Sequence record: ON529850.1
Strand: one strand, 5' to 3'
DNA: 64,000 bases
In this document: positions 22,322 through 54,986 of the stretch, piece after piece
How the letters are laid out: each line of letters starts with the position of its first letter
Position numbering within the stretch: the first letter of the stretch is position 1
The notes under the pieces: generated by a model
The model's input: the letters and a program-made list of their open reading frames with translations, nothing else
Told to the model about the DNA's origin: nothing
Databases searched by the model: none
Position numbers and translations under genes: made by a program

Positions 22322-22337
22322 TTAACCTCTCTTTAAC
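22322..22337. promoter_or_regulatory. Perfect CtrA-type box TTAA-N7-TTAAC upstream of the ardC promoter
   Basis: TTAA cctctct TTAAC; TTAACCAT also at 22380-22387. Confidence 0.55.
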
Positions 22338-22485
22338 TATTTCCTGTTAGTCTGGCTTGGGGAGGGATGCGCTAGGCCGTTAACCATATCGGTTAAGGTT
22401 AACATCGCGTTAAGGTTAACAGTTCGGACGGCGCAAGAAAAAGGCCGCCCGGCGAGGGCGGCCCGGATCAGTCGGGGCGGGGGCG

Positions 22486-22680
22486 TCAGTCCCAGCCCAG
22501 CGCGCGGCGGGCCTCGGCGCGAGCGGCGCGGCCATGCAGCGGGCGCGAGGCGACGGCCTCGCCGTCAAGGTCCATGTCGTCAAATTGGCGGGCGCGTTCG
22601 CGGCGGTCAGTCTGGCGGGCGAAGGCGGCGCGGCGCGCCTCGAAAGCGTCAACGTCATTACGGCGGAAAGTGCGGGCCAT
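22486..22680 (-). CDS. Cassette hypothetical protein
   Basis: Own promoter and terminator. Confidence 0.65.
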   Translation of the reverse strand: MARTFRRNDVDAFEARRAAFARQTDRRERARQFDDMDLDGEAVASRPLHGRAARAEARRALGWD

Positions 22681-22863
22681 GTCAGGACTCCAAGGGTTTG
22701 CGCCTCCGGCCTATCCGGGGCTTCATCAGGCTAGGCGGGGGCGTTCTGGGTGTCAACCTCTTTTTTGTAGAAAAATGGTTAACGGATTAGGGGCGCTGTT
22801 AACCTTAATTGTTAAGGTTAACGCGGACGGTCTAAAGAAAAGGGGCTTTTCAGCCCCTTCCCC

Positions 22864-23097
22864 TTAGTGGCGCGCCTTGGCTTGAGTCGCCAGCCGCAGG
22901 GCGGTTGCGCGGTCGATGCGCTTGCCTTGGAAGGTGTGCGAGTGGCGGGTGATACGGCCATTCGCGCCACGGTGAACGCGGGTCATCAGTTCGCCCCCGT
23001 TGACTTGCATCGTCGTCACCGTCAGGCGGGCGGCGCGGGCGGCGACCGTGGCGGTCGTCAGGGCAAGGCGGGCGTTCAGGTTGCGGGCGGTTTGCAT
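22864..23097 (-). CDS. Cassette hypothetical protein (basic)
   Basis: Conserved leader. Confidence 0.7.
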   Translation of the reverse strand: MQTARNLNARLALTTATVAARAARLTVTTMQVNGGELMTRVHRGANGRITRHSHTFQGKRIDRATALRLATQAKARH

Positions 23098-23340
23098 CGG
23101 GTGTCTCCCTGTTCCGATGACCCCAATCTAGGGGAGGGCTTGGGAGGTGTCAACCGCCTTTTTTCAGAAAAGATGGTTAACAGAATCGGGCCGTTTCGCC
23201 GGTCACGGCGAGGGGCGGCGCGGTCAGGGAACGGGGCGCGACCGGCGCAGGGCGCGCCGCCGGGTCGGCCCCTGCCCTCTCTAGGCTTGGGAAGGGCGCG
23301 GGCGACGGGGCGGCGCTTGAAAGGCCCTCGCGGGGGTAAA

Positions 23341-23434
23341 GTGAAGCGGCGTCAAGTCAAGTCCCGCGTAGGCGAAAGTGAAGCGGCGTCAAGTCAAGTC
23401 CGCATGAGCGAAAGCGAAGCGGCGTCAAGTCAAG
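23341..23434. repeat. Three copies of GAAGCGGCGTCAAGTCAAG
   Basis: Copies near 23343, 23380, 23416. Confidence 0.8.
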
Positions 23435-23484
23435 CGCGGGGCCGTAAACCCGGCCCGGTCAAGCCGGGCCGGGTCAGGGCAAGA

Positions 23485-23964
23485 TCAGGCCGACAACACG
23501 CGGCGATTGACGCGATTCGCGTAGGCCCAGGCGCGAGAGTCTTCCTCGGCGCGGGCGTAAGCCGCTTGGGCCTCGGCGGCGCGTTGCGCCTCGAAGGCTT
23601 CGCGCGGAAACGCCTTTTCGATGCGCTCGCGTTGAGTCTCGTGCCAAGGGCGCGGGTCATGCTTCGGCGCGGGGGCGCGCGGGGGCTTGCCGTCCAGCGT
23701 GACGCGGGCGCCGTTCAGGCCGTGCGACCACTGGCCGCCGGGGTTGAGCTGTTCCAGCAGGGTTTGCGGGTCCATGCCCTCGGGCGCCGTCAGGGCGAGG
23801 CCGGTGCGCTTGTTCAGGACGTGCGCGGGAAACAGTCCGGTTTCCGGGTCGCGCAGGATCAGCGCATATTCAGCGGCGTATCCGTCCGCGTTGATCTGTC
23901 CCGCTTCCAGCAGATAGGCGTTGATGGCGGGATTGGCGGCGATGGCTTTGGCGAGGGTCAGCAT
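23485..23964 (-). CDS. Cassette hypothetical protein
   Basis: Conserved leader. Confidence 0.75.
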   Translation of the reverse strand: MLTLAKAIAANPAINAYLLEAGQINADGYAAEYALILRDPETGLFPAHVLNKRTGLALTAPEGMDPQTLLEQLNPGGQWSHGLNGARVTLDGKPPRAPAPKHDPRPWHETQRERIEKAFPREAFEAQRAAEAQAAYARAEEDSRAWAYANRVNRRVLSA

Positions 23965-24108
23965 GGGGTGTCTCCGTTGCGTTGCCTCAAGGTGTAGCCG
24001 CTCGCCGCGTCAGTGTCAACCGCTATTTTTAATAAATCCAACGCCTCCGGGCGGGTTCGGCGTTAACCTTAACAAATCGCGAGGATGACGCCGGGGCGGC
24101 GCCTGGCC

Positions 24109-24429
24109 CTAGAGGGCGGGGAAGATCACCCGCCCTTGCGCCGTCACCTCATAATCCCACGCGGCGAACATGGCGGCTTCGGCCATGGCGTCAGCGAAAG
24201 ACACCTCGGCGGCGGCTTCGGCGGCTTCCAGCGCGTCGATCTCCGCCAGCTCCTCGGCGTAGGCGTCGGGGTCGCCGTAGCCGCAAGGGCGGTCGGGGCG
24301 ATTGGCGATCCACGCCTCCGCCTCGGCGAGGGTGATGCGGCCCATGGACGGGCGGACCCCGTAGTCGTTTTTGTAGAGGTCGGAATAGAGGCTGAAAACG
24401 TCGTCAGCGTAGGTGCGGGCTTCGGTCAT
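24109..24429 (-). CDS. Cassette hypothetical protein (start MTEARTY)
   Basis: GGAGAGA leader; YSDLYKNDYGVRP motif. Confidence 0.7.
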   Translation of the reverse strand: MTEARTYADDVFSLYSDLYKNDYGVRPSMGRITLAEAEAWIANRPDRPCGYGDPDAYAEELAEIDALEAAEAAAEVSFADAMAEAAMFAAWDYEVTAQGRVIFPAL

Positions 24430-24597
24430 GGCGTCTCTCCGGCGGGACCGTCCCGCCACTCGAACAATCTAGCAAAGAGAAGTTAACAAGAGGTAAACGC
24501 CGCGAGGTTTTTCGTCGGGCCGAGGCGGACGATGAATCGGGCAGGGTCCCCGAGGATGAATCGGGCAGGGTCCCCGTTAAGGTTAATGACCCAGGGC

Positions 24598-24714
24598 TTA
24601 GGGCTTACGCCCCTTGCGGGTGTAAGCCCCGCGCCCCTTCTTGGGGCGGACCACGCGGGGGCGATAAGCCGGGGTGGCGAGGGCGGCGGCGGCGGGGTTC
24701 TTTTTGGGCTTCAT
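24598..24714 (-). CDS. arfA: 38-aa ArfA-like alternative ribosome rescue factor (not in track)
   Basis: MKPKKNPAAAALATPAYRPRVVRPKKGRGAYTRKGRKP; conserved leader and TTGACA promoter. Confidence 0.7.
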   Translation of the reverse strand: MKPKKNPAAAALATPAYRPRVVRPKKGRGAYTRKGRKP

Positions 24715-24777
24715 GGGGTGTCTCCGTTGAAAGCAAAGACACCCTTAAAGGAAGCGCGGTTGACTGTCAACCCCTTT

Positions 24778-25482
24778 TTATTCGGATAAGCCCAGAGAGC
24801 CGGGCGCGATCTTCTGCCCCTGATCCAGTCGAACCGCCATCAGGCCCCGCAGGACTTCGCCGCGCGCCGCATCGTCGGGCAGGGCGTCGAGGCGCGCCGT
24901 CAGGGCCGCGCCGAACGTGCCGGGGAACAGGACGTGCGCCCCGTCTTGCGCGCGAACAGCGATGCGATCCGTCGCGGTCGTGTAGGGCGCCCACAGCGTC
25001 ACGCCGGGATATTCCGCCGCGACCGTCGCGCCAGGGCGAACCGGGGAGGGCTGGCCCGCGCCATAGCCCGCCGGGTGTTCGGTTTCGCCCGGTTGCGGGT
25101 CGGCGTAGCCTTTGCGGACCCGTTCGGCGATCTGCGACGCCGACACCAGCGCGCCGCTGGCATCGACGCGAACCTGGCCGCAAGGCTGTTCAATCACGAC
25201 GTAATCCAGCGCCGAGGCTTCATCATGGACGCGGTTGACGATCAGGCAGATGGTCGAGGCCGTGCCGTATTCCCCTTCGCGCAGGGTGAAGGACGCCCGG
25301 TAGGGATGCAGCGTGGTGGCGTAAACGCTGGCGGCGGTCTTGGCGGTCAGGACGCCTTGGCCGTTGTTGAGCTTCCACGCCGCCAGCTTCTTGGTGAAGC
25401 GTTCGGGCGGGCGCGGCGTCCCGTCGGAAAAGGCGACGAGGGCGCCCAGCGGGGCGGTGCGGATCAGTTCGGCGGCGTTCAT
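24778..25482 (-). CDS. Cassette protein; N-terminus resembles a rhizobial plasmid hypothetical family
   Basis: APLGALVAFSDGTPRPPERF.KKL.AWK; recalled similarity, unverified. Confidence 0.65.
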   Translation of the reverse strand: MNAAELIRTAPLGALVAFSDGTPRPPERFTKKLAAWKLNNGQGVLTAKTAASVYATTLHPYRASFTLREGEYGTASTICLIVNRVHDEASALDYVVIEQPCGQVRVDASGALVSASQIAERVRKGYADPQPGETEHPAGYGAGQPSPVRPGATVAAEYPGVTLWAPYTTATDRIAVRAQDGAHVLFPGTFGAALTARLDALPDDAARGEVLRGLMAVRLDQGQKIAPGSLGLSE

Positions 25483-25594
25483 GGGGCGTCTCCCGTTGTA
25501 GGTCCCTCCCTACTAGGGGCGGGCGCGCAAACTGTCAACCACTTTTTATCAGGTAAGGTCTTGTTAAGGTTAACGCCGGGACGGGGTGGGCGCG

Positions 25595-25948
25595 TCAGGG
25601 CAGACGCGCCGGGTCCAGCGTCAAGGCGCGCCGACGAATCGACAAAGCCCCGCGCGCGGTGCTTCGGGTCGATTTCTGCAACTTGCCCGACTTGGCGGCA
25701 CAGCAGGGGCAGACCTTGGGTTCAGTCGGCAGGACATGGCCCGCCAAGGGGTCGAGGGTGCCGCGAACCGATAGGGTCAGGGCCAGCCCTTGCAGGGCGA
25801 CGGGCGCGCCGGTGCGGCGACGGCGCAGGTCATCATGCACCGTCAGGCCCGCCGAAAGGCGATTCGGGCGCGTCACCGCCACAGGCGATATGGCGACGCG
25901 ATAGCCGCCCGGCATGAGCCGGCGCGTGTCAGGAACATAGCGGCGCAT
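25595..25948 (-). CDS. Cassette hypothetical protein with CPCC motif
   Basis: Coupled to upstream gene. Confidence 0.5.
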   Translation of the reverse strand: MRRYVPDTRRLMPGGYRVAISPVAVTRPNRLSAGLTVHDDLRRRRTGAPVALQGLALTLSVRGTLDPLAGHVLPTEPKVCPCCAAKSGKLQKSTRSTARGALSIRRRALTLDPARLP

Positions 25949-26163
25949 CAGTCGTCGGCCCGGTCCAGGGTGCGGCGCACGTATTCATAGAACATCCGCC
26001 CGGTCGAGCCGTTGGCGTTCTTGGGGGCGCGGTAACGGCGCGAGGCGGCGCATTCCAGCAGGGCGGAAACCTGCGACTGGCGCAGGGTGAAGAAGTTCGC
26101 GCCTTGCTCAATCTGGCAGACTTGCAGAATGTGATACGCTTCGTGTTTGGTCATGCGGGCCAT
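25948..26163 (-). CDS. Cassette hypothetical protein (start MARMTKH)
   Basis: Conserved leader; YRAPKNANGS motif. Confidence 0.75.
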   Translation of the reverse strand: MARMTKHEAYHILQVCQIEQGANFFTLRQSQVSALLECAASRRYRAPKNANGSTGRMFYEYVRRTLDRADD

Positions 26164-26301
26164 GGGGCGTCTCCGTTGTTGGCCCCTCCTTCTAGGGGCG
26201 GGCGCGCCGTCTGTCAACCGCTTTTTATCAGTTAAGGTTTTGTTAAGGTTAACGTGGGCGGGCCGAAGACCGCCCCGGCGGCGAGGCCGGGGCGGCGGGG
26301 C

Positions 26302-26814
26302 TTAGACGGTGATGGCGTCGCGGGCCTTGGTCAGTTGGTCGATCAGCATATCCAGACGGCGCACGGCCTCTTCGCCGGAATCACAGTCTTCCTTGGCGTC
26401 CAGTTCGACCATGACGGCGGTGAAAATCGTGTCGCCGTAGTCCGGCGCGTCGGCCAGGGTTTCGAGCCACGTCACGTCTTCATCCGCGTAGGCGTCGGCG
26501 AATTCCCGTTGCCACGGCGAGACGGGCGACTCGGGAAGGGTGACGCCGAGAATCAGGGGCGTCAGATTGGAGCCGACCTTGAGAATCTGAAACCGGCCCG
26601 CCATGCCGTCGTCAAAGGCGAGTTGCAGCTCCTTGGCGATCTGGCGGGCGAGATCGGCGCCGGTGGCGCTGTTGTCCGCGACGCCCAGCACGGACTCATC
26701 GTCGCCGACGTCGCGTTGCAGCAACACGATGGCGTGATACTCGCTGTCGCTGGCGCGGAACGATTCCAGTTCGGCGCGGGTGGCGGTGAAGGGGGTCATC
26801 AAGTTGTCAGGCAT
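26302..26814 (-). CDS. Cassette hypothetical protein (acidic)
   Basis: Conserved leader. Confidence 0.75.
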   Translation of the reverse strand: MPDNLMTPFTATRAELESFRASDSEYHAIVLLQRDVGDDESVLGVADNSATGADLARQIAKELQLAFDDGMAGRFQILKVGSNLTPLILGVTLPESPVSPWQREFADAYADEDVTWLETLADAPDYGDTIFTAVMVELDAKEDCDSGEEAVRRLDMLIDQLTKARDAITV

Positions 26815-26965
26815 CGGGCGTCTCCGTTGTTGGGACCTCCCTTCTAAGGCCGGGCGCTCTTTCTGTCAACCTCTCTTCAGCAGTTAATGACTCGTTAAGG
26901 TTAATGCGACCGACACGCAAAAAGGGGCGTCGCCATTCCGGCGCCGCCCAGTCTTGCACTCCGTA

Positions 26966-27232
26966 TCAGCGGCCTTGGGCCGCCCTTGTCTTAAAGTTCG
27001 CGACCGCCTCGGGCAGGCTGTCGAAATAGCTGCCCTTGTGGAAACCGCCCAAGTCGTCGTTGCGCCAATGCGTGACGAAAGGGTGGTGCGGGTTGTCGGG
27101 GATGTGGCGCAGGACGACGGCGCCCTTGCACGTTCCGCGCCCGCCGGGAGTCTTGGACTCCAGCAAGGTCGCGCGCTTGGCGGGATCGGCGGCGGCGAGG
27201 GCCGCTTGGGCCTGGGTCAGAAAGTCAGCCAT
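26966..27232 (-). CDS. Cassette hypothetical protein
   Basis: Conserved leader. Confidence 0.75.
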   Translation of the reverse strand: MADFLTQAQAALAAADPAKRATLLESKTPGGRGTCKGAVVLRHIPDNPHHPFVTHWRNDDLGGFHKGSYFDSLPEAVANFKTRAAQGR

Positions 27233-27387
27233 GAGGCGTCTCCGTTGTTGACGCCCTACATCTAGGGCAGGCCGGGCTAGGTGTCAACAACTCTTTTTCA
27301 GAAAAGAGCGTTAATCCGCCGGGGCTCCGCGTTAACCTTAACGCCGGGTGAAGACGATGCGCCCCGGCGCGGAGCCGGGGCGTCGCC

Positions 27388-27672
27388 CTAGAGCGGGGTC
27401 AACTCGTGATAGAGGGCGTCGGGCGCCTCTTCACCACGGGCGAGGGCGGGATAGGCCGAATCGGGCTTGCCGTTGAAGCCCGGCAGAACGATTCCCGGCA
27501 GGTCGCCCAGAAGGCGGAGGCGGTAAAGCGGCACGTCCGCGAACGGCGGGTTTTCGACCGCCCCGAGCACTTCGGCGTTAACCGCGACCCCGACCAGATA
27601 GCCGGGGCGATAGGCGACGATCTGCCCCGGCTTGAGCGCCGGGGCGTCGGGGGTGCGGACAATACGGGTCAT
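27388..27672 (-). CDS. Cassette hypothetical protein
   Basis: Second gene of cassette. Confidence 0.6.
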   Translation of the reverse strand: MTRIVRTPDAPALKPGQIVAYRPGYLVGVAVNAEVLGAVENPPFADVPLYRLRLLGDLPGIVLPGFNGKPDSAYPALARGEEAPDALYHELTPL

Positions 27673-27675
27673 GGC

Positions 27676-27855
27676 TCAAAATCCCTTGGCGAGCGCGGCG
27701 GCTTCGATCAGATGCTGTTGCCCCAGCTTGCGCAGGGCGCTTTTCAGCAGGCGCAGGGCTTCCTTGCGGTTCCCGGCCAGGGCGGCGGCTTCGGCTTGGC
27801 GCGCAAAATGCAGTTTGGACTTGCGGGCGAGGCGGGCGGCTTTGCGGGGCGTCAT
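27676..27855 (-). CDS. 59-aa basic helical protein (start MTPRKAA); paralog of 54592-54804
   Basis: Conserved leader; KLHFARQAEAAALAG. Confidence 0.7.
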   Translation of the reverse strand: MTPRKAARLARKSKLHFARQAEAAALAGNRKEALRLLKSALRKLGQQHLIEAAALAKGF

Positions 27856-28010
27856 CGGCTGTCTCCGTTGCGATGCCCAAGGTCTAAGGCAAGGCCGGGC
27901 GGGTGTCAACTCTTCTTTTGCACAAAAATGGTTAACGGCGGGCGGTGGTTTGTTAAGGTTAACGCGAGCGGGGCGCAGGACGCCGCCCGGCGTCAACCGG
28001 GCGGCGGGGT

Positions 28011-28430
28011 TCAGGCCGGGCGGCCCGTTCTGACGCAATCCGCCGCTTGCGCCCGCGTGTAGCGACTCAACCACAGCCGGGCCGCCGCGTCGTCGCTGGC
28101 GCCCGGCGTCAGGCCGTCCAGACGCGACAGGCGCGCGGCGCTGGCGCACAGCATTTCAGTCGGCAACAAGGCGACGCACAGGGCTTTCAGCGCGCCCACG
28201 TCGGCGCCGTTGAACGCATCGCCCGCCTTGCGGATGACGGCGGCGCTAAGGGCGATCTGCCCCAGCATGGGCAGAAGGGCCGACGCTTCCGCCATCGCCC
28301 CTTGAGTCAATTCGATCAGGTCGGCGGCGGCGTCGTCGCCATGGGCGGCGGCGTCATACCAGATATCGGCGCCCGCCCCCTCGTCGAGGGCGGCGCCGAG
28401 GTCCAGCGGGATCGAGCGGCGCTCGCTCAT
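28011..28430 (-). CDS. Cassette hypothetical protein
   Basis: Coupled second gene. Confidence 0.6.
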   Translation of the reverse strand: MSERRSIPLDLGAALDEGAGADIWYDAAAHGDDAAADLIELTQGAMAEASALLPMLGQIALSAAVIRKAGDAFNGADVGALKALCVALLPTEMLCASAARLSRLDGLTPGASDDAAARLWLSRYTRAQAADCVRTGRPA

Positions 28431-28714
28431 TAGACCGCCTCCCAGCCGGTTTCCGCGTTGTCGTTTTGGACGACTTGCAGTTGCAGGGCCGAATCATAGT
28501 TCGGGGTGAAGGGACCGAGAATCCGCAAGGTGGCCTCTTCGATTTCCTCTTCGGTGAAGCCGTGTTCACCAGAGCAGAAAAAGGCGGCGGCCTGTTCCCC
28601 GGCGGCGGTGGCGTCGGGGTTGCCCCCTTCCTCATACCACACTTCGTCAGAGGCCAGGCGCCCGCCGTCCGCGTCGAGCAGGTGGACGACAAAGAAAAAG
28701 GCTTGGGTTTGCAT
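28430..28714 (-). CDS. Cassette hypothetical protein (acidic, start MQTQAFF)
   Basis: Conserved leader. Confidence 0.7.
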   Translation of the reverse strand: MQTQAFFFVVHLLDADGGRLASDEVWYEEGGNPDATAAGEQAAAFFCSGEHGFTEEEIEEATLRILGPFTPNYDSALQLQVVQNDNAETGWEAV

Positions 28715-28867
28715 CGGGTGTCTCCGTGTTGATGCCCAAGGTGTAAGGGAAGGGCGTGAAGGTGTCAACACCTCTTTTTCAGAAAAGAGGGTTAACGCCC
28801 AGCGGCGGTTTGTTAAGGTTAACGCGAGCGGATCGCAAAACGCCGCCCGGCGAACCGGGCGGCGGGG

Positions 28868-29023
28868 TCAGGCTTGCAGGGCGTCGCGGATCAGCCGCTT
28901 GATCCCGTCGAGGGTGTCGGCGCGCAACCGTTGCCCGTCCGGGGCGGTGGCGGTCCAGCGGATTCCGCTGGCGTTCAGGTCGGCGGGGTGTATGAACACC
29001 CCGCGATATTGCTTCATCTTCAT
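28868..29023 (-). CDS. 51-aa cassette protein (not in track)
   Basis: MKMKQYRGVFIHPADLNASGIRWTA...LRADTLDGIKRLIRDALQA; 4-bp overlap with upstream gene. Confidence 0.6.
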   Translation of the reverse strand: MKMKQYRGVFIHPADLNASGIRWTATAPDGQRLRADTLDGIKRLIRDALQA

Positions 29024-29460
29024 GCCGTCACCTTCCCGCCCTTGACCTTGGCGGCGTCGCGGATCAGCGAAAACAGTTCGTCATGCGCCTTGTTGACGAC
29101 GGCGGTTGAATGGACGCAGAAGGCGCCCAAGGTGACGATTTGCGCGGATTTCCACAGATAGGCGCGCAAGCTGGCGCGGCGCTCGCCGTTCGCGCCCTTT
29201 TCGGTGGTGACGAAGGTCGTCGCCCCATAGGCGTCATGATCGGTGAAGCCGGACGGGAATCGGGTGCCGAATCCGCGCATGGCGTTCGGATCGAACCAAT
29301 GCCCGCGACGACGGCGGGCGTAATCGCGTTCGATATTGGCGAGGCAGTTGCTCGAACCCGTGAAGGCCGGGCCTTCATAGGGGGCGCGGGGTTGATCGGC
29401 CAGGGCGGCTTTCAGGGCGTCGAAAGCTTCGGCGGCGAGGCGTTGGGCTTGCGTGGTCAT
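29020..29460 (-). CDS. Cassette hypothetical protein
   Basis: Conserved leader; HWFDPNAMRGFG motif. Confidence 0.75.
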   Translation of the reverse strand: MTTQAQRLAAEAFDALKAALADQPRAPYEGPAFTGSSNCLANIERDYARRRRGHWFDPNAMRGFGTRFPSGFTDHDAYGATTFVTTEKGANGERRASLRAYLWKSAQIVTLGAFCVHSTAVVNKAHDELFSLIRDAAKVKGGKVTA

Positions 29461-29610
29461 GGGGTCGTCTCCGTTGCGTTGCCTCAGACTTAAAGGGCGG
29501 CGCGGCGCGTGTCAACCGCTTTTCTACATGAAAATGGTTTAGCTTGCGTTAAGGTTAACGCGAGCCGGTCGCAGAACGCCGCCCGGCGAACCGGGCGGCG
29601 GGATACGGGG

Positions 29611-29931: not shown

Positions 29932-30084
29932 CGGTCGTCTCCGTTGCGATGCCCCAGGTGTAGGGGATGGGCGTGGGTGTGTCAACCTCTTTTTATTGTG
30001 AAGATGGTTAACGCCGGTGAGGGTTTTGTTAAGGTTAACGCAACGCGGGTGGAGGAAACCGCCCGGCGAACCGGGCGGCGGGGA

Positions 30085-30609: not shown

Positions 30610-30753
30610 GAGGTGTCTCCGTGTTGATGCCCAAGGTGTAGGGGATGGGTGGGAGCGTGTCAACACCTCTTTTTCAGAAAATATCAGGCAGGGATTTGTT
30701 AAGGTTAACGCGACCGGATCGCAGAACGCCCCGGCGCGAGGCCGGGGCGGGGA

Positions 30754-45438: not shown

Positions 45439-45440
45439 GG

Positions 45441-46693: not shown

Positions 46694-46694
46694 G

Positions 46695-47257: not shown

Positions 47258-47299
47258 GGGGTGTCTCCCGTTGTTCGTTGGGTCCGGTATAGGCCGGGA

Positions 47300-47638: not shown

Positions 47639-47794
47639 AGGGTGTCTCCGGTGTTGCGTTGAACCCCTTCTAGGCCGGGCGGCGTGGAGTGTCAACCTCT
47701 TTTTCGTAGTTATTTTCTGTTAAGGTTAACGCGAGGCGGTCGCGTGAAAAGCGCCCGGCCGGGGGAGACAAGCCCGGCCGGGCGCGGCGGCGTC

Positions 47795-48148
47795 TCAGGC
47801 GTTGAGATCGCCGTATTCGGTCCCGCATTGCAGGATTTCGCCGGTGTCCTTGGCGAAATGGATTTGGTTGAGCCGCAGGAGCCCGCCGGTGCGCGGATGG
47901 GGCCACTCGACCTGACAGGTCAGCATATCGTCGAAGATGACCTGCGGGGCGCCGTATTGCGACCAGTCGATGCCGCCGCGCGCGTCAATCTCGCCCTTGG
48001 CGTCGGAGACGATGCGATCCAGCACCGTCCGGGCGATCCGGCCCGGCGCGCTCTTGATCCCATAGGCGCCGCGCCCGTTGTTGGCGAAGCTGTTCCAGTT
48101 GCTTTCGTCTTGAGTGTAGTTCTCGACGTCGATCTGTTCGTCCGTCAT
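47795..48148 (-). CDS. Cassette hypothetical protein
   Basis: GGAG RBS; second gene of cassette. Confidence 0.65.
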   Translation of the reverse strand: MTDEQIDVENYTQDESNWNSFANNGRGAYGIKSAPGRIARTVLDRIVSDAKGEIDARGGIDWSQYGAPQVIFDDMLTCQVEWPHPRTGGLLRLNQIHFAKDTGEILQCGTEYGDLNA

Positions 48149-48152
48149 CGCC

Positions 48153-48536
48153 TCACTCCTTGTTGATGATCAGGTAGCCCGGCACGTCGTCGCGGGCTTG
48201 CGGGCGCACCACGAAGAGATAGAACCGGCCGTTGTGGGTGCGGTTCTTGGCCTCGGCGGCGTCGCGGGTCGGATAGACCGACAGGCCCAGGGCGGGCAAC
48301 CAGTCGCCGATCCACGGCTCGTCGTTGAGCGTCAGCAGATACTGCTGCGGCAGGTCGTCCTCGTCGCGCTCGTCTTCGCTCTCGTCCAGATGCTCGACCT
48401 CCCACCAGCCGGCGCCGTGGGCGTCGCCCGAGGTGTAGCCCTCGCGGACCTGCCCGGCGATCATGTCCAGCACGTCCGCCAGATGATCGGCGGTCAGGGC
48501 GGCGCGGGGGCGGAAGGTGAAAACCGTGTTCTTCAT
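48153..48536 (-). CDS. Cassette hypothetical protein
   Basis: Conserved leader; IAGQVREGYTSG motif. Confidence 0.75.
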   Translation of the reverse strand: MKNTVFTFRPRAALTADHLADVLDMIAGQVREGYTSGDAHGAGWWEVEHLDESEDERDEDDLPQQYLLTLNDEPWIGDWLPALGLSVYPTRDAAEAKNRTHNGRFYLFVVRPQARDDVPGYLIINKE

Positions 48537-48733
48537 GTCGGGTGTCTCCGTTGTTCTGTCTCCCTTCTATCCTGGATGGTTTCAGGTGTCAACCTCTTTT
48601 TTCTCACTAAGTTTTACCGATAACGGTAATTAAGGCGGGGTTGGGCGCGCTTAGCCGCCATATTTACCTTAAAAGGTAATTCGTTAAGGTTAACGCGAGC
48701 GGATCGCAGAAAGGGAGCCGAAGCCCCCTTCCC

Positions 48734-49243
48734 TTACGCCTGGGTCACGTTCGCGCGGTAGAAGGCGACGCCCTCCGCCTCGGGCATGAGGTTCAGGATC
48801 ACCGCCTCCGGTTCCTTCTCCCGGATGACCTTGACATGGGCGTCAAGGGGGTGGGGCGCCTTCAAGGCCATCTGGAAGATGCCGGTCTTGCCCGGCTTGG
48901 TGAACAGGACTTTCTTCTTGACGGCGCGGCGGTAATCCTTGAGCCATTCGCCGGCGGTGATTTCCTCGCCGATCAGCAGCGACAGGTCCATGTCGATCAG
49001 GCCGAAGCCTTCGCCCAGATCGAATTTCGGATAGGTCGCCTTAATGCGCGCTTCCAAGGCGGTCAGGTCATTGTAGGTGAACCGGCCGACCGGGTGGATT
49101 CGGTCCTCGCCGCCCTGCCCGGTGTTCGACGCCTCGGCGAACTTCTCGCCATCGACATAGACGGTGGCGGTGTAGGCGGTCGTCTCCTCCGACAGGGAGG
49201 GCATGGTCTTGAGGCTCTTGAGGGTGATGATGGGTTTCTTCAT
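48734..49243 (-). CDS. Cassette hypothetical protein
   Basis: Conserved leader; SEETTAYTATVYVDG...SNTGQGG motif. Confidence 0.78.
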   Translation of the reverse strand: MKKPIITLKSLKTMPSLSEETTAYTATVYVDGEKFAEASNTGQGGEDRIHPVGRFTYNDLTALEARIKATYPKFDLGEGFGLIDMDLSLLIGEEITAGEWLKDYRRAVKKKVLFTKPGKTGIFQMALKAPHPLDAHVKVIREKEPEAVILNLMPEAEGVAFYRANVTQA

Positions 49244-49403
49244 GTCGGGTGTCTCCGTTGCTCTGTCTCTCTTCTAGCCGGGGCGGTTTCAAGTGTCAAC
49301 CGCTTTTGCGTAGATAATGCCGGAGCGACGTTAACCTTAATGCGGTGTTAAGGTTAATGCGAACGGGGCGCAGAAAGGCGGTCCGTCAGGACCGCCCCTC
49401 GCG

Positions 49404-49976
49404 TCAGGCCAGATAGACCTTGCCGTCGTCGCCGATATAGACCCCGACCGTCCCAAAAGCCTCGGCGGCGGATTGCAGGGCCGTGCCGTGCGGTGAGGGC
49501 CAGCCGCCGTCGAAGAAACCGGCGCCATGCCCGTTGCGGCTGAGCCAGAAGTCATGCCCCGCCTTGGGGCTGTCGATGTCGGGGAAGTCCAGCGTCGCCG
49601 TCTCGGGCATGGCCTCGGCATAGGCGTCGAAGGCGCGAGTTCCCCGGAACAGGTCGCAGTCGGCGATGATGCGCGCCAGCGTCTCCGGCGCCAGGTCGGT
49701 GAAGCGGGCGGCGCGGAAGGACGGCGCGGCGGCGGGCTTGTCGTCGCACCACCATTCGGACTCGTTCAGGTCCGTGAGCATCCAGTCCCAGGCGCCGTCG
49801 CTGCGCGTCTGCGGGGCGAGGCTCCACCCTTGGAACAGGGCGATGATGTAGCCTTGGGTGAAGGCGTCAAGGTCGCGTTCCCACAGATAGACGTTTGACG
49901 CCTTCGGCGCCCAGGAAACGGGCGGATCAAGCGGGATGCAAACCTCTCCGGTGGTGTCGAGAATGAGTTCCGGCAT
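49404..49976 (-). CDS. Cassette protein with GHDFWLSRNGHGAGFFDG motif; paralog of 33905-34525
   Basis: GGAGA leader; shared motif. Confidence 0.78.
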   Translation of the reverse strand: MPELILDTTGEVCIPLDPPVSWAPKASNVYLWERDLDAFTQGYIIALFQGWSLAPQTRSDGAWDWMLTDLNESEWWCDDKPAAAPSFRAARFTDLAPETLARIIADCDLFRGTRAFDAYAEAMPETATLDFPDIDSPKAGHDFWLSRNGHGAGFFDGGWPSPHGTALQSAAEAFGTVGVYIGDDGKVYLA

Positions 49977-49985
49977 GGGCGTCTC

Positions 49986-50189
49986 CTACAGGGCCAGGGC
50001 GGCGTCGAAGGCCGCCGATTGCAGTTTCTTGGCGGCTTCGGCTTCGCGGGGGTGCCGTTGCGCCATGCCGTCAAAGCGTTCTTTCTGGTGCGACCGCTCG
50101 CCGTCAGCGGTGGTCATGTTCATCACCTCGCCCCACAGGTGGGCCATTTCGAGGATCAGGACGGAACGGCGGGAAGCGTTCATAGTCAT
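49986..50189 (-). CDS. Cassette hypothetical protein
   Basis: Conserved leader. Confidence 0.7.
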   Translation of the reverse strand: MTMNASRRSVLILEMAHLWGEVMNMTTADGERSHQKERFDGMAQRHPREAEAAKKLQSAAFDAALAL

Positions 50190-50260
50190 CGGGTGTCTCC
50201 GGTTGCGGTGGTTCTGTCTTAGCCCGCCGCAACCACAGTGTCAACCGTTCTTTTTCAACA

Positions 50261-50737
50261 TCAGCACCGCCGCAGCATTTCGCGCGTCAAGGCTTCTTCC
50301 TGGCGGGCGATGTCAATCGCGGCGCGCTCATTCGCCTTGGCGTGGGCGCTGGCGGCCTGTTCCTGACAGATGGCCTGACGCCGGCGAATCTCATTGGTCG
50401 AAAGGGTGCGGAACAGGACGTCGGCGTCCTGATCGACCTTGACGGTCCAGTGCTGCGCGGATTCATCGTCCGACCGCAGGTGCGGCGGGAAATAGATGTC
50501 CGCCACGTCCTGTTGAAAGAAGGTGCCGTCGCCGCGCATCTTGCGTTCCAGGTCCGCCACCTCGGCGGGCGCGATCTCGTCGATTGAGAAGGTCACGCTT
50601 TCGCCCAGGCCGTCGCCCTCGTCGATGAAATGGCCGATCTGCCCCAGCGACATACGCTCGACGGCGTGAACGTCTTCGGGCGTATGGGCCGTGTGCAGAA
50701 CCGTCACGGTGATGACGGTGCGGATGATCTGAGGCAT
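50261..50737 (-). CDS. Cassette hypothetical protein (start MPQIIRT)
   Basis: Conserved leader. Confidence 0.72.
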   Translation of the reverse strand: MPQIIRTVITVTVLHTAHTPEDVHAVERMSLGQIGHFIDEGDGLGESVTFSIDEIAPAEVADLERKMRGDGTFFQQDVADIYFPPHLRSDDESAQHWTVKVDQDADVLFRTLSTNEIRRRQAICQEQAASAHAKANERAAIDIARQEEALTREMLRRC

Positions 50738-50888
50738 GGGGTGTCTCCCGTTGTTGTTCGCCGCCTGTGTAAGGCGGTCGAAAAGGAGTGTCAACCTCTT
50801 TTTCACAGTAAGTCGTCAACCTTAATGCGGTGTTAAGGTTAACGCGAACCGTGCGCGCAAAAGAAAACCCGGCCGAAGCCGGGTTCCC

Positions 50889-51221
50889 TCAGAAAGGTAT
50901 GTCGGAGTCCAGCGCGGGCGCCGGCTCGACGGGGGCGGGCGGGGCGTTCAGGGCGGCGATGTAGGCCGCCTGTTCCGCCTCGCTCATGTCCCAGAAGGAA
51001 TCATCTTCCGGGTGCGGGCCGCGCGGTCCCCGATAGTGGGGGTTGCGCTCCCAGGTGTCGAACGGCGACAGCACATATTCGCTGTCCGGGTCGAGGCTCC
51101 CATAGGCCGAGGCATACTGAAACACCGCCTCGCTCATGTATTCCGCCTGTCCCATCGCCTCCTGCGCCAGGGCGTCCGCCTTTTCGCGCTCGTAGGCGTC
51201 GACTCGTTCCAGGTAGTCCAT
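50889..51221 (-). CDS. Cassette hypothetical protein
   Basis: GGAGA leader; LSPFDTWERNPHYRGP..PHPED motif. Confidence 0.75.
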   Translation of the reverse strand: MDYLERVDAYEREKADALAQEAMGQAEYMSEAVFQYASAYGSLDPDSEYVLSPFDTWERNPHYRGPRGPHPEDDSFWDMSEAEQAAYIAALNAPPAPVEPAPALDSDIPF

Positions 51222-51417
51222 GTTCAGTTCTCCGGTTGAAGCTACTTCATGGCGGTTCTCCTTGGGTTGGGGTTGCTCTCGTCTTGAGGCCCCACCATAG
51301 CGTGGCGGTTCAGGGTGTCAACACCTTTTTCGTAGAAAAATCGTCGGTCGGGCGCTGTTAAGGTTAATGCGACCGGATCGCAGTTGGACCCCGGCCTAAG
51401 CCGGGGTCGGGTGCGCG

Positions 51418-51774
51418 TCAGCCGCCGAGGCGCTGGATGATTTCGTCATTCGACATCGTGTCCATCAGTTCCTCGACGCGGCGGGCCTTTTCATCCTCGA
51501 CCTTCTGGGCCGCCGCCTGGGCGCGGCGATAGTCGGCCATCGCCGCCTTGCCCGCCTCGGTCGTCTCGGGATCGACCGTCATGTAAAGCGTGACCTCGCG
51601 GCCCTGGCGATCCACGAAGACCGGGCGCCCGGACGGCGTCATCGTCACGGTGAAATGGTGCTTGACCAGCCGATTGGCGGTCTCCATCCCGAAGTCGCCG
51701 CCGAAGCAGCCGCCGGCCGCCTTGACCGTGTGGTTTTTACGCAGGCGGGTGTGATAGCCGATATTCTTGTGCAT
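51418..51774 (-). CDS. Cassette hypothetical protein
   Basis: Conserved leader. Confidence 0.72.
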   Translation of the reverse strand: MHKNIGYHTRLRKNHTVKAAGGCFGGDFGMETANRLVKHHFTVTMTPSGRPVFVDRQGREVTLYMTVDPETTEAGKAAMADYRRAQAAAQKVEDEKARRVEELMDTMSNDEIIQRLGG

Positions 51775-51938
51775 GGGGTGTCTCCTCCCTTGATCTGCCC
51801 CAGGGTATAGCCGGGGCGGCTCTAGGTGTCAACCCCTTTTTCATAGAAAAATGCCGGGGATGCGTTAAGGTTAACGCGAACCGGTCGCGAAAGATGCGCC
51901 CGGCCGGGGGAGACAAGCCCGGCCGGGCGCGGTTCGGT

Positions 51939-52565
51939 TCAGACGGCGACGTGCTTGCCGGTCTCGTCGAACCAATAGCCGTTGATCTTCAACGTCTCGT
52001 TGACCGCCTCGTCGGAGGTTTTGGCCTCGTAAGCCTCGCGAAGCTGTTCCCAAATCCAGTCCATGTATCGGCGCAGGACGTTCGCCAGGGCGCGCTCCGT
52101 CTCGGGCGTCACGTCGCCGTCTTCGCCGAAGGTGACATGAATATCCACGGACCCCGAATGGGTGTAGCGGTCGCGGTGGCTGATCTCCGCGCGCAGGGCG
52201 AAGCCGTTGTCTTGTTGCAGGGTGAACAGGTCGGCGGCGATTTGAAGCAGCTTCGCATCGCGCGGCGCCTCTTCCTTGAGCGCCGCGAGGGCGCCGGCCT
52301 TGAAGACGTAGCCGCCGGTGAAACAGGCGCCGTCGCCTTGGGTGTAGAAGCCGCTCCACAGGATGCGCGGGCTTCCGTTCAGTTCGGTGTCGAGGGTGAT
52401 TCCCATCAGGGCGGCGAAGGCGTCCGCCTCTTCCAGGACCGGTTCGGCATAGTCGGTGTCGCCCGACATCACCACGTCGGTGAACCACGTCCGCGCGGCT
52501 TCCTTGGCCGTTTCGGTCGGCAGTTCGTCGATCTGGTAGAGGGTGCGGGTCTGGATCATGGGCAT
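51939..52565 (-). CDS. Homolog of a plasmid/ICE protein family often labelled antitoxin of TA stability system
   Basis: LYQIDEL...AKEAARTWF, WSGFYTQGDGACF, WIWEQL.E.YE..TSDEAV.E.L..N.Y.F.E.G; recalled family pattern. Confidence 0.7.
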   Translation of the reverse strand: MPMIQTRTLYQIDELPTETAKEAARTWFTDVVMSGDTDYAEPVLEEADAFAALMGITLDTELNGSPRILWSGFYTQGDGACFTGGYVFKAGALAALKEEAPRDAKLLQIAADLFTLQQDNGFALRAEISHRDRYTHSGSVDIHVTFGEDGDVTPETERALANVLRRYMDWIWEQLREAYEAKTSDEAVNETLKINGYWFDETGKHVAV

Positions 52566-52732
52566 GGCGGGCGTCTCCGTTGCGGTGTCCCTGTGATGTA
52601 GCCGGGGCGGGTAAGGGTGTCAACCTCTTTTTATCAGAAAAACATCATGGGGCTGCGTTAACCTTAATGCAGTGTTAAGGTTAACGCGAACGGGTCGCAG
52701 AACGCCCCGGCCGAAGCCGGGGCGGGCGCGGG

Positions 52733-53263
52733 TCAGCCTTCGCCGAAGTAGAAGGCGCTCAGCCACGTCATGATGGCGGCGTCGTCTTCGTAGCTGGTCG
52801 GGTAGTCGGTCCACGGCGTCCCCCAGTCCTGATATTGCAGGCGCGGGTTCGACGGGTCGCCCCACGAACCCAGGTCGCCGCGCAGGCGCAGGGCCGGGCC
52901 GCCGGTGGACAGCAGGACTTCGAATTCTTCGGCGCCGTCGCGGTCCTCGGGATCGCGCGGGCCGGGGTTGCGCCAGCCGTCGCGCACCTGCACCGACAGA
53001 ACCGATTCGGTGATGGTCTGGCGCACGTCGTCCGCGTCCACCTCCTCGGCCTCGACCGGCTCGACGCTGTAGTCGTCCAGACCGGCGGCCTCGGCGGCGT
53101 CCTCGGCTTCCGTCTCGGTGTCGTAGGTGGCGCTCTCATAGCCTTCGGCTTCGATGACGTAGCCGGTCGGCTCGGCGTCGCCGTTGGCGGCGTTCAGCTG
53201 CGCGGCCTGCTCCTTGATGGTTTCGAGCCAGGCGGCGGCGTTGTTCTTGGCGTGGTCGCTCAT
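52733..53263 (-). CDS. Cassette hypothetical protein (extremely acidic)
   Basis: Conserved leader; EEFEVLLSTGGPA, LQYQDWGTPW motifs. Confidence 0.78.
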   Translation of the reverse strand: MSDHAKNNAAAWLETIKEQAAQLNAANGDAEPTGYVIEAEGYESATYDTETEAEDAAEAAGLDDYSVEPVEAEEVDADDVRQTITESVLSVQVRDGWRNPGPRDPEDRDGAEEFEVLLSTGGPALRLRGDLGSWGDPSNPRLQYQDWGTPWTDYPTSYEDDAAIMTWLSAFYFGEG

Positions 53264-53437
53264 GTCGGTGTGTCTCCCGTTGTTGTGTCTCCCTTCTAGG
53301 CCGGGCGGGCGGGAGTGTCAACACTTCTTTTTCAGAAAAATGGTTAACGTCGGGCGGGCGGCGGTTAACCTTAATGCGGCGTTAAGGTTAATGCGAGCGG
53401 ACCGCAGAACGCCCCGGCCGAAGCCGGGGCGGGCGAC

Positions 53438-53683
53438 TCAGTCCCGGCTCATGCCGGGAAAGTTCGGGTTGGCGTCGCACCACGCCTGCGCCTCGGCCTC
53501 GGTGGCCAAGGGCGGGCGCGCGAGGCCGGTGGTGCCGTCGGGGTGTTCGACCGTCCAGCCCGCCGCCTCGCGGGTCCAGTGGGGGCGGTCGGCCTCGCTC
53601 GTCCAGGGGGCGGCGCCCCGGATCGAGGCGGTGCGGCCGGTCACGGCGTGGCGCCAGACAAAGTGTTCGATGGGGCGGCTCAT
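53438..53683 (-). CDS. Cassette hypothetical protein
   Basis: Conserved leader. Confidence 0.75.
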   Translation of the reverse strand: MSRPIEHFVWRHAVTGRTASIRGAAPWTSEADRPHWTREAAGWTVEHPDGTTGLARPPLATEAEAQAWCDANPNFPGMSRD

Positions 53684-53757
53684 GGGGGCGTCTCCGTTGT
53701 TGATGACACCCTTCTAGCGGGGCGCCGAAAGGGTGTCAACCTCTTTTTATCAGAAAA

Positions 53758-54546
53758 TCAGTCCCGCGTGTCGGCGATCATCTGCGCCGTCTCGGCGGCG
53801 ATCTCGGCGCGCGGGCCGACCAGCAGCCAGCCGTCTTCGTCGGCGCTCGGGTCGAAGACGACCCAAGGCCCGGCGTATTGCGTCGCGCGCACGATCAGCG
53901 CGGCCTTGATCGCCTCATGCCGGGCGGCGATCTCGTCCGGCGTCAGGGACGGGGCGCCCGAAAAGGCGTTGATTTCGAATCGGCCTTCAAAGAAGTCGGC
54001 GCGGCGGCGGAACCGATAGCCGCCCGCCCGCGTGGCGTGTTCGGCCTGCGAATAGATTTCGGCGCCGAACAGATGGCCCATCACGTCGCCCCTGTTCTGA
54101 TTGGTCAGGAAGGCGGGCGGATCGACAAAGCGCACGATCAGGCCCAGGAATTCGCTTTCGGTGAAATAGCCGGTGACGACGGCGCGCCCCAGGTTGTTGA
54201 AGTTGGCTTCCACCTCGGCGCCGACGGCGGGCGGGGCGTCCACGCCGCCCCAGCGCGGCAGGCCCTTGGACGGGGCGATCTCGCCGTCTTCCAGCGTCTC
54301 CAGCGGCTCCCAGGCGGGCAGCTCCGGGGTCCAGCCGTAGGCGTAGGTGTCCAGCAGCCAGGACGGGCCGTAACGGTTGCGGATCAGCCGCAATTCGATC
54401 CCGTGGGTGTCGTCGTCCATCTCGGTCGAGTCGGCCCAGGCGTCGCACAGGACGTTCTTCCAGCCGGGGCCGTGCGCGTTGGCGAACGATTGCAGGGCGG
54501 CGGCGGCGGCCCCGCTCAAGGGCCTATAGACGAAGGTGTCAGTCAT
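53758..54546 (-). CDS. Cassette multidomain hypothetical protein
   Basis: Conserved leader. Confidence 0.75.
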   Translation of the reverse strand: MTDTFVYRPLSGAAAAALQSFANAHGPGWKNVLCDAWADSTEMDDDTHGIELRLIRNRYGPSWLLDTYAYGWTPELPAWEPLETLEDGEIAPSKGLPRWGGVDAPPAVGAEVEANFNNLGRAVVTGYFTESEFLGLIVRFVDPPAFLTNQNRGDVMGHLFGAEIYSQAEHATRAGGYRFRRRADFFEGRFEINAFSGAPSLTPDEIAARHEAIKAALIVRATQYAGPWVVFDPSADEDGWLLVGPRAEIAAETAQMIADTRD

Positions 54547-54591
54547 GGGGCGTCTCCCGTTGCGGTGTTGATCCTGTCTAGCCGGGCGGCG

Positions 54592-54804
54592 TCAGGTTGT
54601 CAACCCCTTTTCTGTGGAAATTGTTTCACGCGGCTGGACTGCATAGGTGCGCCGCACGGCGCGCTCCGCGCCCTGCTTCTGCAAGGCCAGCTTGAGGCAG
54701 CGGTGCGCCTCCGCCTTGTCGCCCGACAGGGCGGCCTCTTCGGCGCGGCGGGCGAAATACAGCTTGGCGCGGCGGGAATAGCGGGCGGCGATCTTGGCGT
54801 TCAT
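54592..54804 (-). CDS. Basic helical protein, paralog of 27676-27855
   Basis: KLYFARRAEEAALSG; conserved leader. Confidence 0.72.
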   Translation of the reverse strand: MNAKIAARYSRRAKLYFARRAEEAALSGDKAEAHRCLKLALQKQGAERAVRRTYAVQPRETISTEKGLTT

Positions 54805-54986
54805 CGGATGTCTCCGTGGTGTCTGTCCTCTCTTCTAGGGCAGGGCGGGGAGGGTGTCAACCTCTTTTCTGTAGAAAATGCAGGAGACCCGTTAACCTTA
54901 ATGCGGCGTTAAGGTTAATGCGAACGGCTCGCGTTAACCTTAACAGGACGGGGCGGGGGCGGCCCGCCAGCGGCGGGCCTTGTCGG

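Follow-up and report, generated by a model that had tools for sequence, protein, structure and literature searches.

A terminator-coupled TTAA-doublet box in the cassette array of Brevundimonas phage vB_BpoS-Gurke, a predicted site for a host protein

The closest described systems are those of the phiCbK-like and Delta-like phages, for which a concentration of CtrA sites in the terminal regions, with electrophoretic mobility shift assay (EMSA) and reporter evidence, was already published in 2022 (PMC9437464). CtrA~P binding and CtrA-dependent expression were shown for terminal or gap regions of both groups; the experimentally validated CtrA boxes of phiCbK (TTAACGGTTTGTTAAC) lie at the -35 of gp005 and gp018, and the 81-bp phage Delta EMSA probe shifted by CtrA~P contains ATTAACCTTAAT-gccgc-GTTAACCTTAC doublets (PMC9437464). 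According to the lytic deferment model, phages that enter via swarmer pili or flagella use CtrA to sense the cell-cycle state of their host (PMC9437464). On the bacterial side, TTAACCAT is the accepted ungapped CtrA motif (PMC6180460), the SciP consensus from chromatin immunoprecipitation sequencing is (G/A)TTAACCAT(A/G), described for flagellar promoters as a component of an "extended CtrA box" (Fumeaux et al. 2014, PMC4083442), and upstream CtrA sites tune the Caulobacter pilA promoter (PMC11264516). Here we describe a short box with the core TTAACCTTAA that recurs along a cassette array in the final 64 kb of the genome of Brevundimonas phage vB_BpoS-Gurke (ON529850.1), and which is predicted to be a protein-binding site for a host factor, the likeliest being CtrA, possibly together with SciP.

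The 64,000-nucleotide stretch that was analysed (the window) is 100% identical to positions 257511-321510 of the record. Gurke is a jumbo phage of 321.5 kb belonging to the Dolichocephalovirinae (phiCbK-like), and its host is B. pondensis LVF1. Between about 19 and 57 kb of the window the annotated genes are all on the minus strand and all "hypothetical", with the portal and protease genes on one side and terL on the other. Since the array genes are on the minus strand, the motifs are best read in reverse complement. Combining the annotation of ON529850.1 with ribosome-binding site (RBS) calls, we obtained 50 RBS-defined genes and 46 spacers, the latter making up approximately 40% of the length of the array.

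The 12-mer GTTAAGGTTAAC, with at most one mismatch, has 62 matches in the window where 0.05 are expected. In gene orientation it reads GTTAACCTTAAC. All mismatches, bar one, fall at position 1 (G51/A11) or position 12 (C53/T9), so that the 10-bp core TTAACCTTAA, its central CC included, is invariant in 61 of the 62 copies. Every one of the 61 copies inside the array is non-coding and lies in a spacer. In the whole Gurke record, 61 of 63 matches are found within 276.8-317.7 kb (window 19.3-60.2 kb), a segment of 41 kb or 12% of the genome, and 162 of the 175 TTAA tetramers of the window fall in 19-56 kb. This is congruent with the initial annotation, made from the sequence by a model, which had placed CtrA-type boxes in cassette spacers. 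The elements are TTAA-based, non-coding and restricted to the terminal array of early-type cassettes, and they share the sequence grammar of the terminal and gap regions, rich in CtrA sites, of phiCbK-like and Delta-like phages.

The same annotation had drawn attention to CtrA-type TTAA spacing, and here the picture is divided. The commonest distance between TTAA tetramers is 6 bp (63 pairs), followed by 27 (21), 17 (20), 21 (17) and 11 bp (14); with 63 pairs at 6 bp versus 14 at 11 bp, the repeat unit is a 6-bp TTAA doublet and not the 11-bp CtrA repeat. The CtrA-type spacing TTAA-N7-TTAA does occur at 14 sites in the window (0.02 expected), namely eight palindromes, one 17-bp direct repeat and five others. 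Thirty-one copies, or arms, are isolated, with their TTAAs 2 nt apart (TTAA-N2-TTAA), and the other 31 belong to multi-arm arrangements.

Neighbouring arms, which are found in both orientations, are arranged as inverted pairs with 17-bp spacing (the extended palindrome; seven exact and the variant at 50815), as a direct repeat of 17 bp (one), inverted around a GCGA-N5-TCGC element (two), inverted at 27 bp (two) and directly repeated at 27 bp (two). The eight palindromes compare with none expected in 100 shuffles. All of the palindromes that had been reported at the outset were recovered, as were the perfect TTAA-N7-TTAAC at 22322, the symmetric site at 31937 (ATGGTTAA-N7-TTAACCAT) and the three arms at 27-bp spacing (20861, 20888 and 20915) (Table 1). 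The 17-bp direct repeat matches the arrangement in the phage Delta probe shifted by CtrA~P.

Two independent phage pairs show purifying selection on the 12-mer. Where Gurke and Kikimora align syntenically, 12-mer positions are 96.9% identical, the rest of the spacers 87.1% and coding sequence 88.5% (binomial p about 1e-19 for the 12-mer excess); the -35 reaches 99.6% and the ribosome site 100%. Not above background are the GCGA-N5-TCGC element (83%), the AT-rich tract (82%) and the motif GTTAACC(A/C)T (89.6%), all of which are discussed below. In the independent pair Marchewka and Domovoi the 12-mer is 98.3% identical versus 90.0% for the rest of the spacer (p about 8e-9). The raised identity in both pairs therefore indicates a constrained element and not a relic of spacer duplication. 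The GCGA-N5-TCGC element was also considered as a separate conserved site and rejected, its 83% identity being under the spacer background and its stem changing without compensation. A larger inverted arrangement of arms has this element at its centre, at 54908-54944, at 55482-55518 and in phage Leszy (see below).

A typical spacer measures 135-200 nt. On the minus strand its stop codon is followed by a GC-rich hairpin whose T-tail is short, then by GCGAnCCGnTCGC, the 12-mer GTTAACCTTAAC, an AT-rich tract of the ttttctgaaaaagagg type, a TTGACAc -35, N17, a cCTAGAAg -10, caACGGAGAcaccc and ATG. The GCGAnCCGnTCGC slot is the GCGA-N5-TCGC element between terminator hairpin and 12-mer, and the ribosome site is of the GGAGA type. 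The RNA fold of one such spacer (43201..43338) shows the terminator hairpin. Terminators and promoters were counted by our own pattern searches, with a strict T-tail filter for the terminators. A standard E. coli-type promoter and terminator scan is uninformative here: the -10 resembles that of Caulobacter, and with T-tails as short as TTTT or TTCT the terminators score at background. We take the cassette -10, cCTAGAAg, to resemble the Caulobacter sigma-73 -10, GCTANAWC.

The position of the box is tied to the terminator. It starts 16-20 nt (mode 17) after the hairpin stem, and its distance to the -35 downstream varies from 24 to 97 nt. A terminator was detected together with a box at 25 promoters, seven have neither, and eleven have a box only, most of these with a hairpin that the strict tail filter missed. 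Six full promoters (at window 54603, 53739, 50244, 47314, 45115 and 24770) directly follow a coding region without terminator or 12-mer; these are internal promoters, inside two-gene units.

TTGACA occurs 58 times on the minus strand versus six on the plus strand, and full promoters (TTGACA-N16-18-YTA) number 39 on the minus, or gene, strand and none on the plus. A CtrA box at the -35, scored as TTAA-N7-TTAA 8-13 nt before the -10, was found at none of the 39 Gurke and none of the 36 Kikimora cassette promoters. Direct activation of the Gurke cassettes by CtrA is unlikely, because the promoters have consensus TTGACA with an AT-rich upstream tract, and the initial suggestion that early cassettes are tied to the cell-cycle state of the host would need revision as far as the promoters are concerned. 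The Gurke and Kikimora promoters are of the host sigma-70/sigma-73 type (TTGACA, N17, CTAGAA, AT-rich upstream tract), so the boxes cannot be their activating -35 element.

A second TTAA-containing motif, GTTAACC(A/C)T, is present 17 times in the window versus 0.2 expected, 13 of these being GTTAACCAT. At 13 promoters it starts 27-28 nt before TTGACA, i.e., at about -62, and in this sense the half-sites previously noticed just upstream of -35 elements are real. In Gurke the motif does not overlap or adjoin a CtrA box within a promoter; it lies upstream of TTGACA promoters that have no CtrA box.

Sister phages differ in promoter type. In the 30 kb of Domovoi that were examined there are 29 cgTTAACcTcTTGTTAAc-N10-gCTAga promoters and no TTGACA promoter, and this is also true for Marchewka (host LVF1, as for Gurke), with 16 and none. 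TTGACA promoters number 39 in Gurke and 36 in Kikimora, and neither of these phages has a CtrA-box promoter. The 12-mer is present in all four (Domovoi 45, Marchewka 25, Gurke 61 and Kikimora 49 copies). For instance, the orthologous gene at window 35331-36329 is preceded by the palindrome and TTGACA in Gurke, and by one arm and GTTAACcggatGTTAAC in Domovoi. Because all four phages keep the 12-mer across promoter types, it is separate from the activating CtrA box and outlasts it. From these sequences we predict that the Gurke cassettes would fire without CtrA, and that the promoters of Marchewka and Domovoi would be CtrA-dependent.

The box is not confined to this group. Phage phiCbK has four copies of the 12-mer within its terminal repeat, in a non-coding part rich in repeats (2000-2105). 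Leszy, a Delta-like phage of the same host strain as Gurke that is not placed in the Dolichocephalovirinae, has six boxes, all in a 1.2-kb gap region and including a GCGA...TCGC-ATTAACCTTAAC composite. The exact palindrome core is found in nine IMG/VR contigs, seven of them metagenomic with 48-66% GC. In a set of 185,579 representative bacterial genomes, 12 contain the exact palindrome, and eight of these belong to Methylopila or Hansschlegelia. In these eight it precedes a CTAG/CTAT-type -10 by 3-4 nt, some 55 nt ahead of a flagellin gene, and forms the -35 box of the flagellin promoter; a second flagellin promoter in these genera has GTTAACTTTAA-N7-TTAAG.

As to the protein that reads the box, the initial annotation had offered a phage-encoded binder or recombinase as one alternative. 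Pfam and PHROGs scans revealed no DNA-binding or recombinase domain in the 50 cassette proteins, the only domain hits being ArdC-like, ArfA-like and DUF7447, and Leszy has the motif yet no recognisable DNA-binding protein in common with Gurke. Both findings speak against such a protein. The search for a common factor (BLASTP of six-frame open reading frames, ORFs) returned only nucleotide-metabolism, helicase, tail-lectin, capsid and DUF4326 proteins; a weak small-protein match next to the Leszy gap was not significant after multiple testing and has no domain. Leszy also encodes a GapR-like DNA-binding protein (L051:25226-25624, 1.1e-8) for which BLASTP finds no Gurke counterpart. Outside the array, the annotated regulators of Gurke are of the XRE helix-turn-helix type (one possibly TgrL-like) and a GcrA homologue. 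Pfam lends no support to the genes annotated as "histidine kinase" and "MotA-like middle transcription regulator", and the "winged-helix" gene within the Domovoi array gave no Pfam hit. The occurrence of the motif in unrelated phages of one host and in bacterial flagellin promoters makes a host protein conserved across Alphaproteobacteria the simplest reader. Of such proteins, CtrA is known to read TTAA sites.

By inspection, the 12-mer matches the ungapped CtrA/SciP motif at eight of nine positions, (G/A)TTAACC plus T. We judge the chances that CtrA and/or SciP reads the TTAACCTTAA box to be evenly balanced. On sequence grounds, the case for binding by either is strongest at the palindromes and 17-bp repeats, with their canonical TTAA-N7-TTAA, and weaker at isolated arms. 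Several observations weigh against it. Half of the arms are isolated at TTAA-N2-TTAA, and a CtrA dimer on one face of the DNA cannot use both TTAAs; in some arrangements the inner TTAAs are 19 bp apart, out of helical phase. The central CC varies no more than the TTAAs do, in contrast to canonical CtrA sites, whose N7 is degenerate, and the position of the box is tied to the terminator, not the promoter. In the spacers of Domovoi and Marchewka the 12-mer and the canonical box cgTTAACcTcTTGTTAAc are both conserved, a variable 18-51 nt apart, and this coexistence could mean two different proteins. Finally, no Brevundimonas or Caulobacter match to the exact palindrome was found among the representative genomes scanned.

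Much of this could also be explained by another sequence-specific protein, either a host factor or a small fast-evolving phage protein, that marks cassette boundaries; bound 16-20 nt past a weak-tailed terminator, it would act as a roadblock or insulator against read-through between cassettes. The invariance of all ten core bases, the central CC too, would suit such a protein, as would the fixed distance to the terminator stem beside a variable distance to the -35, the lack of a box at the seven promoters without an upstream terminator, the coexistence with a distinct canonical CtrA box in Domovoi and Marchewka, and T-tails so short that they score at background. However, the boxes of Leszy and phiCbK cluster away from terminators, the palindrome of the bacterial genomes is at the -35 and not past a terminator, no candidate phage protein is common to Leszy and Gurke, and in spacers this short the closeness to the terminator may merely reflect lack of room. 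We consider a binder other than CtrA/SciP, the main rival reading, possible, though on the doubtful side.

With CtrA, possibly with SciP, as the reader, the proposed mechanism would run as follows. Two boxes 17 bp apart, inverted or direct, present through their inner TTAAs a canonical TTAA-N7-TTAA CtrA site. With one or more boxes 16-20 nt past its terminator and ahead of the promoter that follows, almost every cassette would have upstream modulators or insulators, and all the boxes together would make up a large set of docking sites for CtrA/SciP. The bound protein could tune each promoter, as the upstream pilA sites do, and help to stop read-through; and some 60 boxes per genome, multiplied by replication, could sequester CtrA/SciP. 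The anatomy of the spacers, the enrichment and invariance of the box, the purifying selection on it, its spread over phages and hosts and the contrast in promoter type between sister phages are observed; in this scheme we infer the identity of the binder, the direction of its effect, the early timing of the cassettes and the titration of CtrA.

Arrays of small ORFs bring to mind the promoter-early stem-loop (PeSL) cassettes of T4-type phages, reportedly described by Arbiol and colleagues in 2010 as early ORF arrays with a host-type promoter and a stem-loop in a hyperplastic region. Gurke is similar in that its small ORFs of unknown function each have a host-type promoter and a stem-loop. To our knowledge, no extra invariant protein-box motif has been reported for PeSLs, and their proposed role is recombination, not regulation. 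By analogy, the terminator-box-promoter spacers could be mainly homology for cassette recombination, with the box kept for that purpose or by gene conversion. One small ORF per unit with a repeated promoter and stem-loop is in keeping with this, and crude chaining of Gurke and Kikimora shows cassette-sized indels whose breakpoints are often at borders between spacers and coding sequences; three repeat-rich hub regions recur along the array, and the composite of GCGA-N5-TCGC plus arm is common to Gurke and the unrelated Leszy. On the other hand, homology needs no 10-bp invariant core inside otherwise diverged spacers, where the neighbouring GCGA-N5-TCGC and AT-rich tract drift at or above the background rate; the box is found in both orientations and also in bacterial flagellin promoters, and the array has no recombinase domain. 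We therefore regard recombination as an unlikely main function, and one that may well occur as a by-product.

An integron-like attC array was rejected, as nearly every cassette has its own promoter, none of the 50 proteins has a recombinase domain, and the only annotated integrase is about 140 kb away. Integron, iteron or origin, pac-site and IHF readings likewise fail on the cassettes' own promoters, the presence of one box per spacer over 38 kb, and the lack of an IHF consensus.

It is also conceivable that the palindromes are no protein sites and act as nucleic-acid structures, forming hairpins in the RNA of read-through or antisense transcripts, or cruciforms in the DNA. They do fold to 13-bp hairpins (z-scores -2.6 to -5), metagenomic relatives have a consensus antisense promoter firing into the palindrome and a bidirectional terminator, and in Gurke a CtrA-box-like antisense promoter at 22322 points at two arms. 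Yet half of the arms are single and can form no hairpin, others are direct repeats, the arms are invariant with no compensatory variation, and the boxes lie downstream of the terminators. Gurke spacers are generally without antisense promoters, and Rfam gave no match at gathering thresholds. A structural role strikes us as highly improbable.

The 22322 site with its TAGTCT has the same geometry as the canonical CtrA-box promoters of Marchewka and Domovoi, and antisense transcription from the predicted promoter (22322-22440, plus strand) would run into GTTAACCAT and two 12-mers and reach a terminator from behind. In the IMG/VR metagenomic relatives with 48-52% GC (L025:150-330 and 1040-1200; L035:2200-3900), every spacer carries a near-consensus TTGACC-N17-TATAAT opposite to the genes. 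This antisense promoter fires into GTTAAT, the TTAACCTTAA palindrome and the bidirectional terminator, and an antisense or small RNA of about 100 nt is possible. A 26-bp perfect palindrome, GCAACATTACAAATTTGTAATGTTGC, is found beside it.

A wider and more tentative reading, to which we would give somewhat less credence than to CtrA/SciP binding as such, takes three propositions together: that TTAACCTTAA is the site of an undescribed factor or CtrA/SciP binding mode and a terminator-coupled boundary element insulating about 45 early cassettes; that this factor or mode is conserved from Caulobacterales phages to Hyphomicrobiales flagellin promoters; and that, inside a single phage subfamily on a single host strain, the early array has been rewired between CtrA-box (Marchewka, Domovoi) and sigma-70-type promoters (Gurke, Kikimora) with the box kept. 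If so, the host cell cycle would hold back early transcription in one of the two phage groups and not in the other.

Table 1. Positions of boxes, promoters and genes in the window (L003 and L004 are other stretches of Gurke)
Feature	Position	Strand	Description and basis
Cassette array	19300..57300	-	About 50 small, mostly unannotated genes; own promoter each, terminator in most
Large terminase gene	57452..60187	-	Annotation; holds the predicted genome end
Typical single-arm spacer	43201..43338	-	Stop, hairpin + TTTT, GCGATCCGCTCGC, GTTAACCTTAAC (43282-43293), 24-nt AT-rich tract
Same spacer, promoter part	43201..43338	-	TTGACA (43252-43257), N17, TAGAAG, ACGGAGA, ATG
Promoter run with GTTAACC(A/C)T	27928..33812	-	Starts 27928, 28788, 30004, 31433, 31861, 32358, 32776, 33331, 33804
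Further promoters with GTTAACC(A/C)T	20837, 22775, 23173, 53340 (starts)		
Extended palindrome	31457..31485	.	Arm, N5, inverted arm; inner TTAA-N7-TTAA; pattern match
Extended palindrome, perfect	33828..33856	.	Pattern match
Extended palindrome	36426..36454	.	Pattern match
Extended palindrome	49330..49358	.	Pattern match
Extended palindrome, variant	50815..50843	.	GTCAACC outer arm; pattern match
Extended palindrome, perfect	52657..52685	.	Pattern match and RNA fold
Extended palindrome	53364..53392	.	Followed on minus strand by GTTAACCAT (53340-53348), 27 nt before -35; pattern match
Three-arm element	54891..54944	.	Palindrome 54891-54919 + second inverted pair (arms 54908, 54933) around GCGAGCCGTTCGC
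Five-arm cluster	55456..55630	.	Head of array, beside CATACCGGGTATG-type hairpin
Two arms, direct repeat	22392..22420	-	17-bp period (inner TTAA-N7-TTAA); not a palindrome
Three arms, direct repeat	20861..20926	-	27-bp period; then GTTAACCAT (20837-20845) + promoter
Perfect TTAA-N7-TTAAC	22322..22337	+	Antisense to genes; TAGTCT 10 nt downstream
Symmetric site	31937..31959	.	ATGGTTAAC-N5-GTTAACCAT, two ungapped CtrA/SciP-type motifs, inverted; pattern match
XRE-type gene	L003:40770-41192		
GcrA gene	L003:37819-38340		
"MotA-like" gene	L004:33689-34279		
"Histidine kinase" gene	L004:40171-42321		

The physical left end of phiCbK is at codon 652 of terL (Gill 2012, PMC3556154). It aligns with residue ~654-656 of the Gurke TerL, which places the predicted left end of Gurke, the record of which is circularised, near window 58225; the array accordingly starts approximately 1 kb inside the predicted leading end. 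By position, the five-arm cluster at the array head corresponds to the terminal-repeat cluster of phiCbK (1925-2105). The GGGGACCCT and TTGACG blocks that flank the phiCbK 12-mer cluster recur at window 55.8-57.1 kb, which is syntenic with the phiCbK terminal repeat.

At three places (window 56914-57100, 36094-36235 and 24531-24576) there are tandem repeats of 24 bp built around a GGGGACCCT core, and their blocks mark the three repeat-rich hub regions along the array. The GGGGACCCT repeat is also present in the phiCbK terminal repeat (850-990) and in Domovoi (L050:~29600). Beside these blocks are TTGACG/GTCAA repeat arrays with periods of 16-36 bp (window 55781-56060, 34944-35018 and 23338-23472), which are syntenic with the "gagcgttttgacg" repeats of phiCbK (1760-1900). 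Possible roles for these arrays are those of promoter-like decoys, an origin, or a signal for injection or packaging.

Two cassette products can be named. The gene at window 21324-22235 (minus strand), annotated as "DNA primase", encodes an ArdC-type anti-restriction protein (ArdcN 1.6e-37 plus zincin metallopeptidase 8e-45), which would fit an anti-defence role of leading-end cassettes. The 38-amino-acid product of 24601-24714 (minus strand) matches the alternative ribosome-rescue factor ArfA (3.5e-8).

Sister jumbo phages that infect the same Brevundimonas strain and share the TTAACCTTAA box, and yet use different promoter classes, canonical CtrA-box promoters in one group and constitutive-looking sigma-70 promoters in the other, constitute a natural experiment on lytic deferment. 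If the binder of the box were named, it would become clear whether CtrA/SciP can bind in an extended mode that has gone unrecognised, maybe also at host flagellin promoters. The role of the box, be it promoter modulation, terminator insulation or a CtrA sink, would reveal how phages divide dozens of host-takeover genes into independent units. The box is, moreover, a simple and specific marker for the early regions of uncultivated alphaproteobacterial phages.

Our literature search with the 12-mer and core strings returned no relevant paper. What is new relative to the literature searched is the TTAACCTTAA doublet and its palindrome, the coupling to terminators, the occurrence at flagellin promoters and the wholesale switch of promoter type. 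Gurke itself, we presume, was outside the data set of the 2022 study by Mascolo and colleagues. The phiCbK genome paper does not mention the motif (PMC3556154).

The pili- or flagellotropic alphaproteobacterial phages of Mascolo et al. (2022, PMC9437464), termed "LPEG" phages, belong to the same subfamily and, as in Gurke, have TTAA sites just downstream of terL; in both cases the sites are clustered, intergenic and upstream of small genes of unknown function, and the Delta probe bound by CtrA~P has the same TTAACCTTAA doublets as Gurke. That study scored the canonical 17-bp TTAA-N7-TTAA, and the doublet, the 29-bp palindrome and the terminator coupling are undescribed there. The CtrA-box promoters of phiCbK are few in number; in Gurke there are some 60 boxes, not one at a -35, and the promoters are of the sigma-70 type.

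The SciP/ungapped CtrA motif is resembled by the Gurke GTTAACC(A/C)T, with its fixed distance to the -35 at 13 promoters. The SciP targets of Caulobacter are flagellar promoters, and the palindrome described here is at flagellin promoters of other Alphaproteobacteria. The 12-mer differs from the SciP consensus in having a second TTAAC in place of AT(A/G); furthermore, the host SciP motif overlaps the CtrA box of the promoter, whereas the Gurke 12-mer is far upstream, beside the terminator. At pilA (PMC11264516), multiple non-consensus upstream TTAA sites tune or repress the promoter, and titration and oligomerisation models have been discussed, a situation not unlike that of the Gurke boxes. 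However, pilA is driven by a CtrA box at the -35 and its upstream sites are degenerate, whereas the Gurke cassettes have TTGACA and a box with an invariant core.

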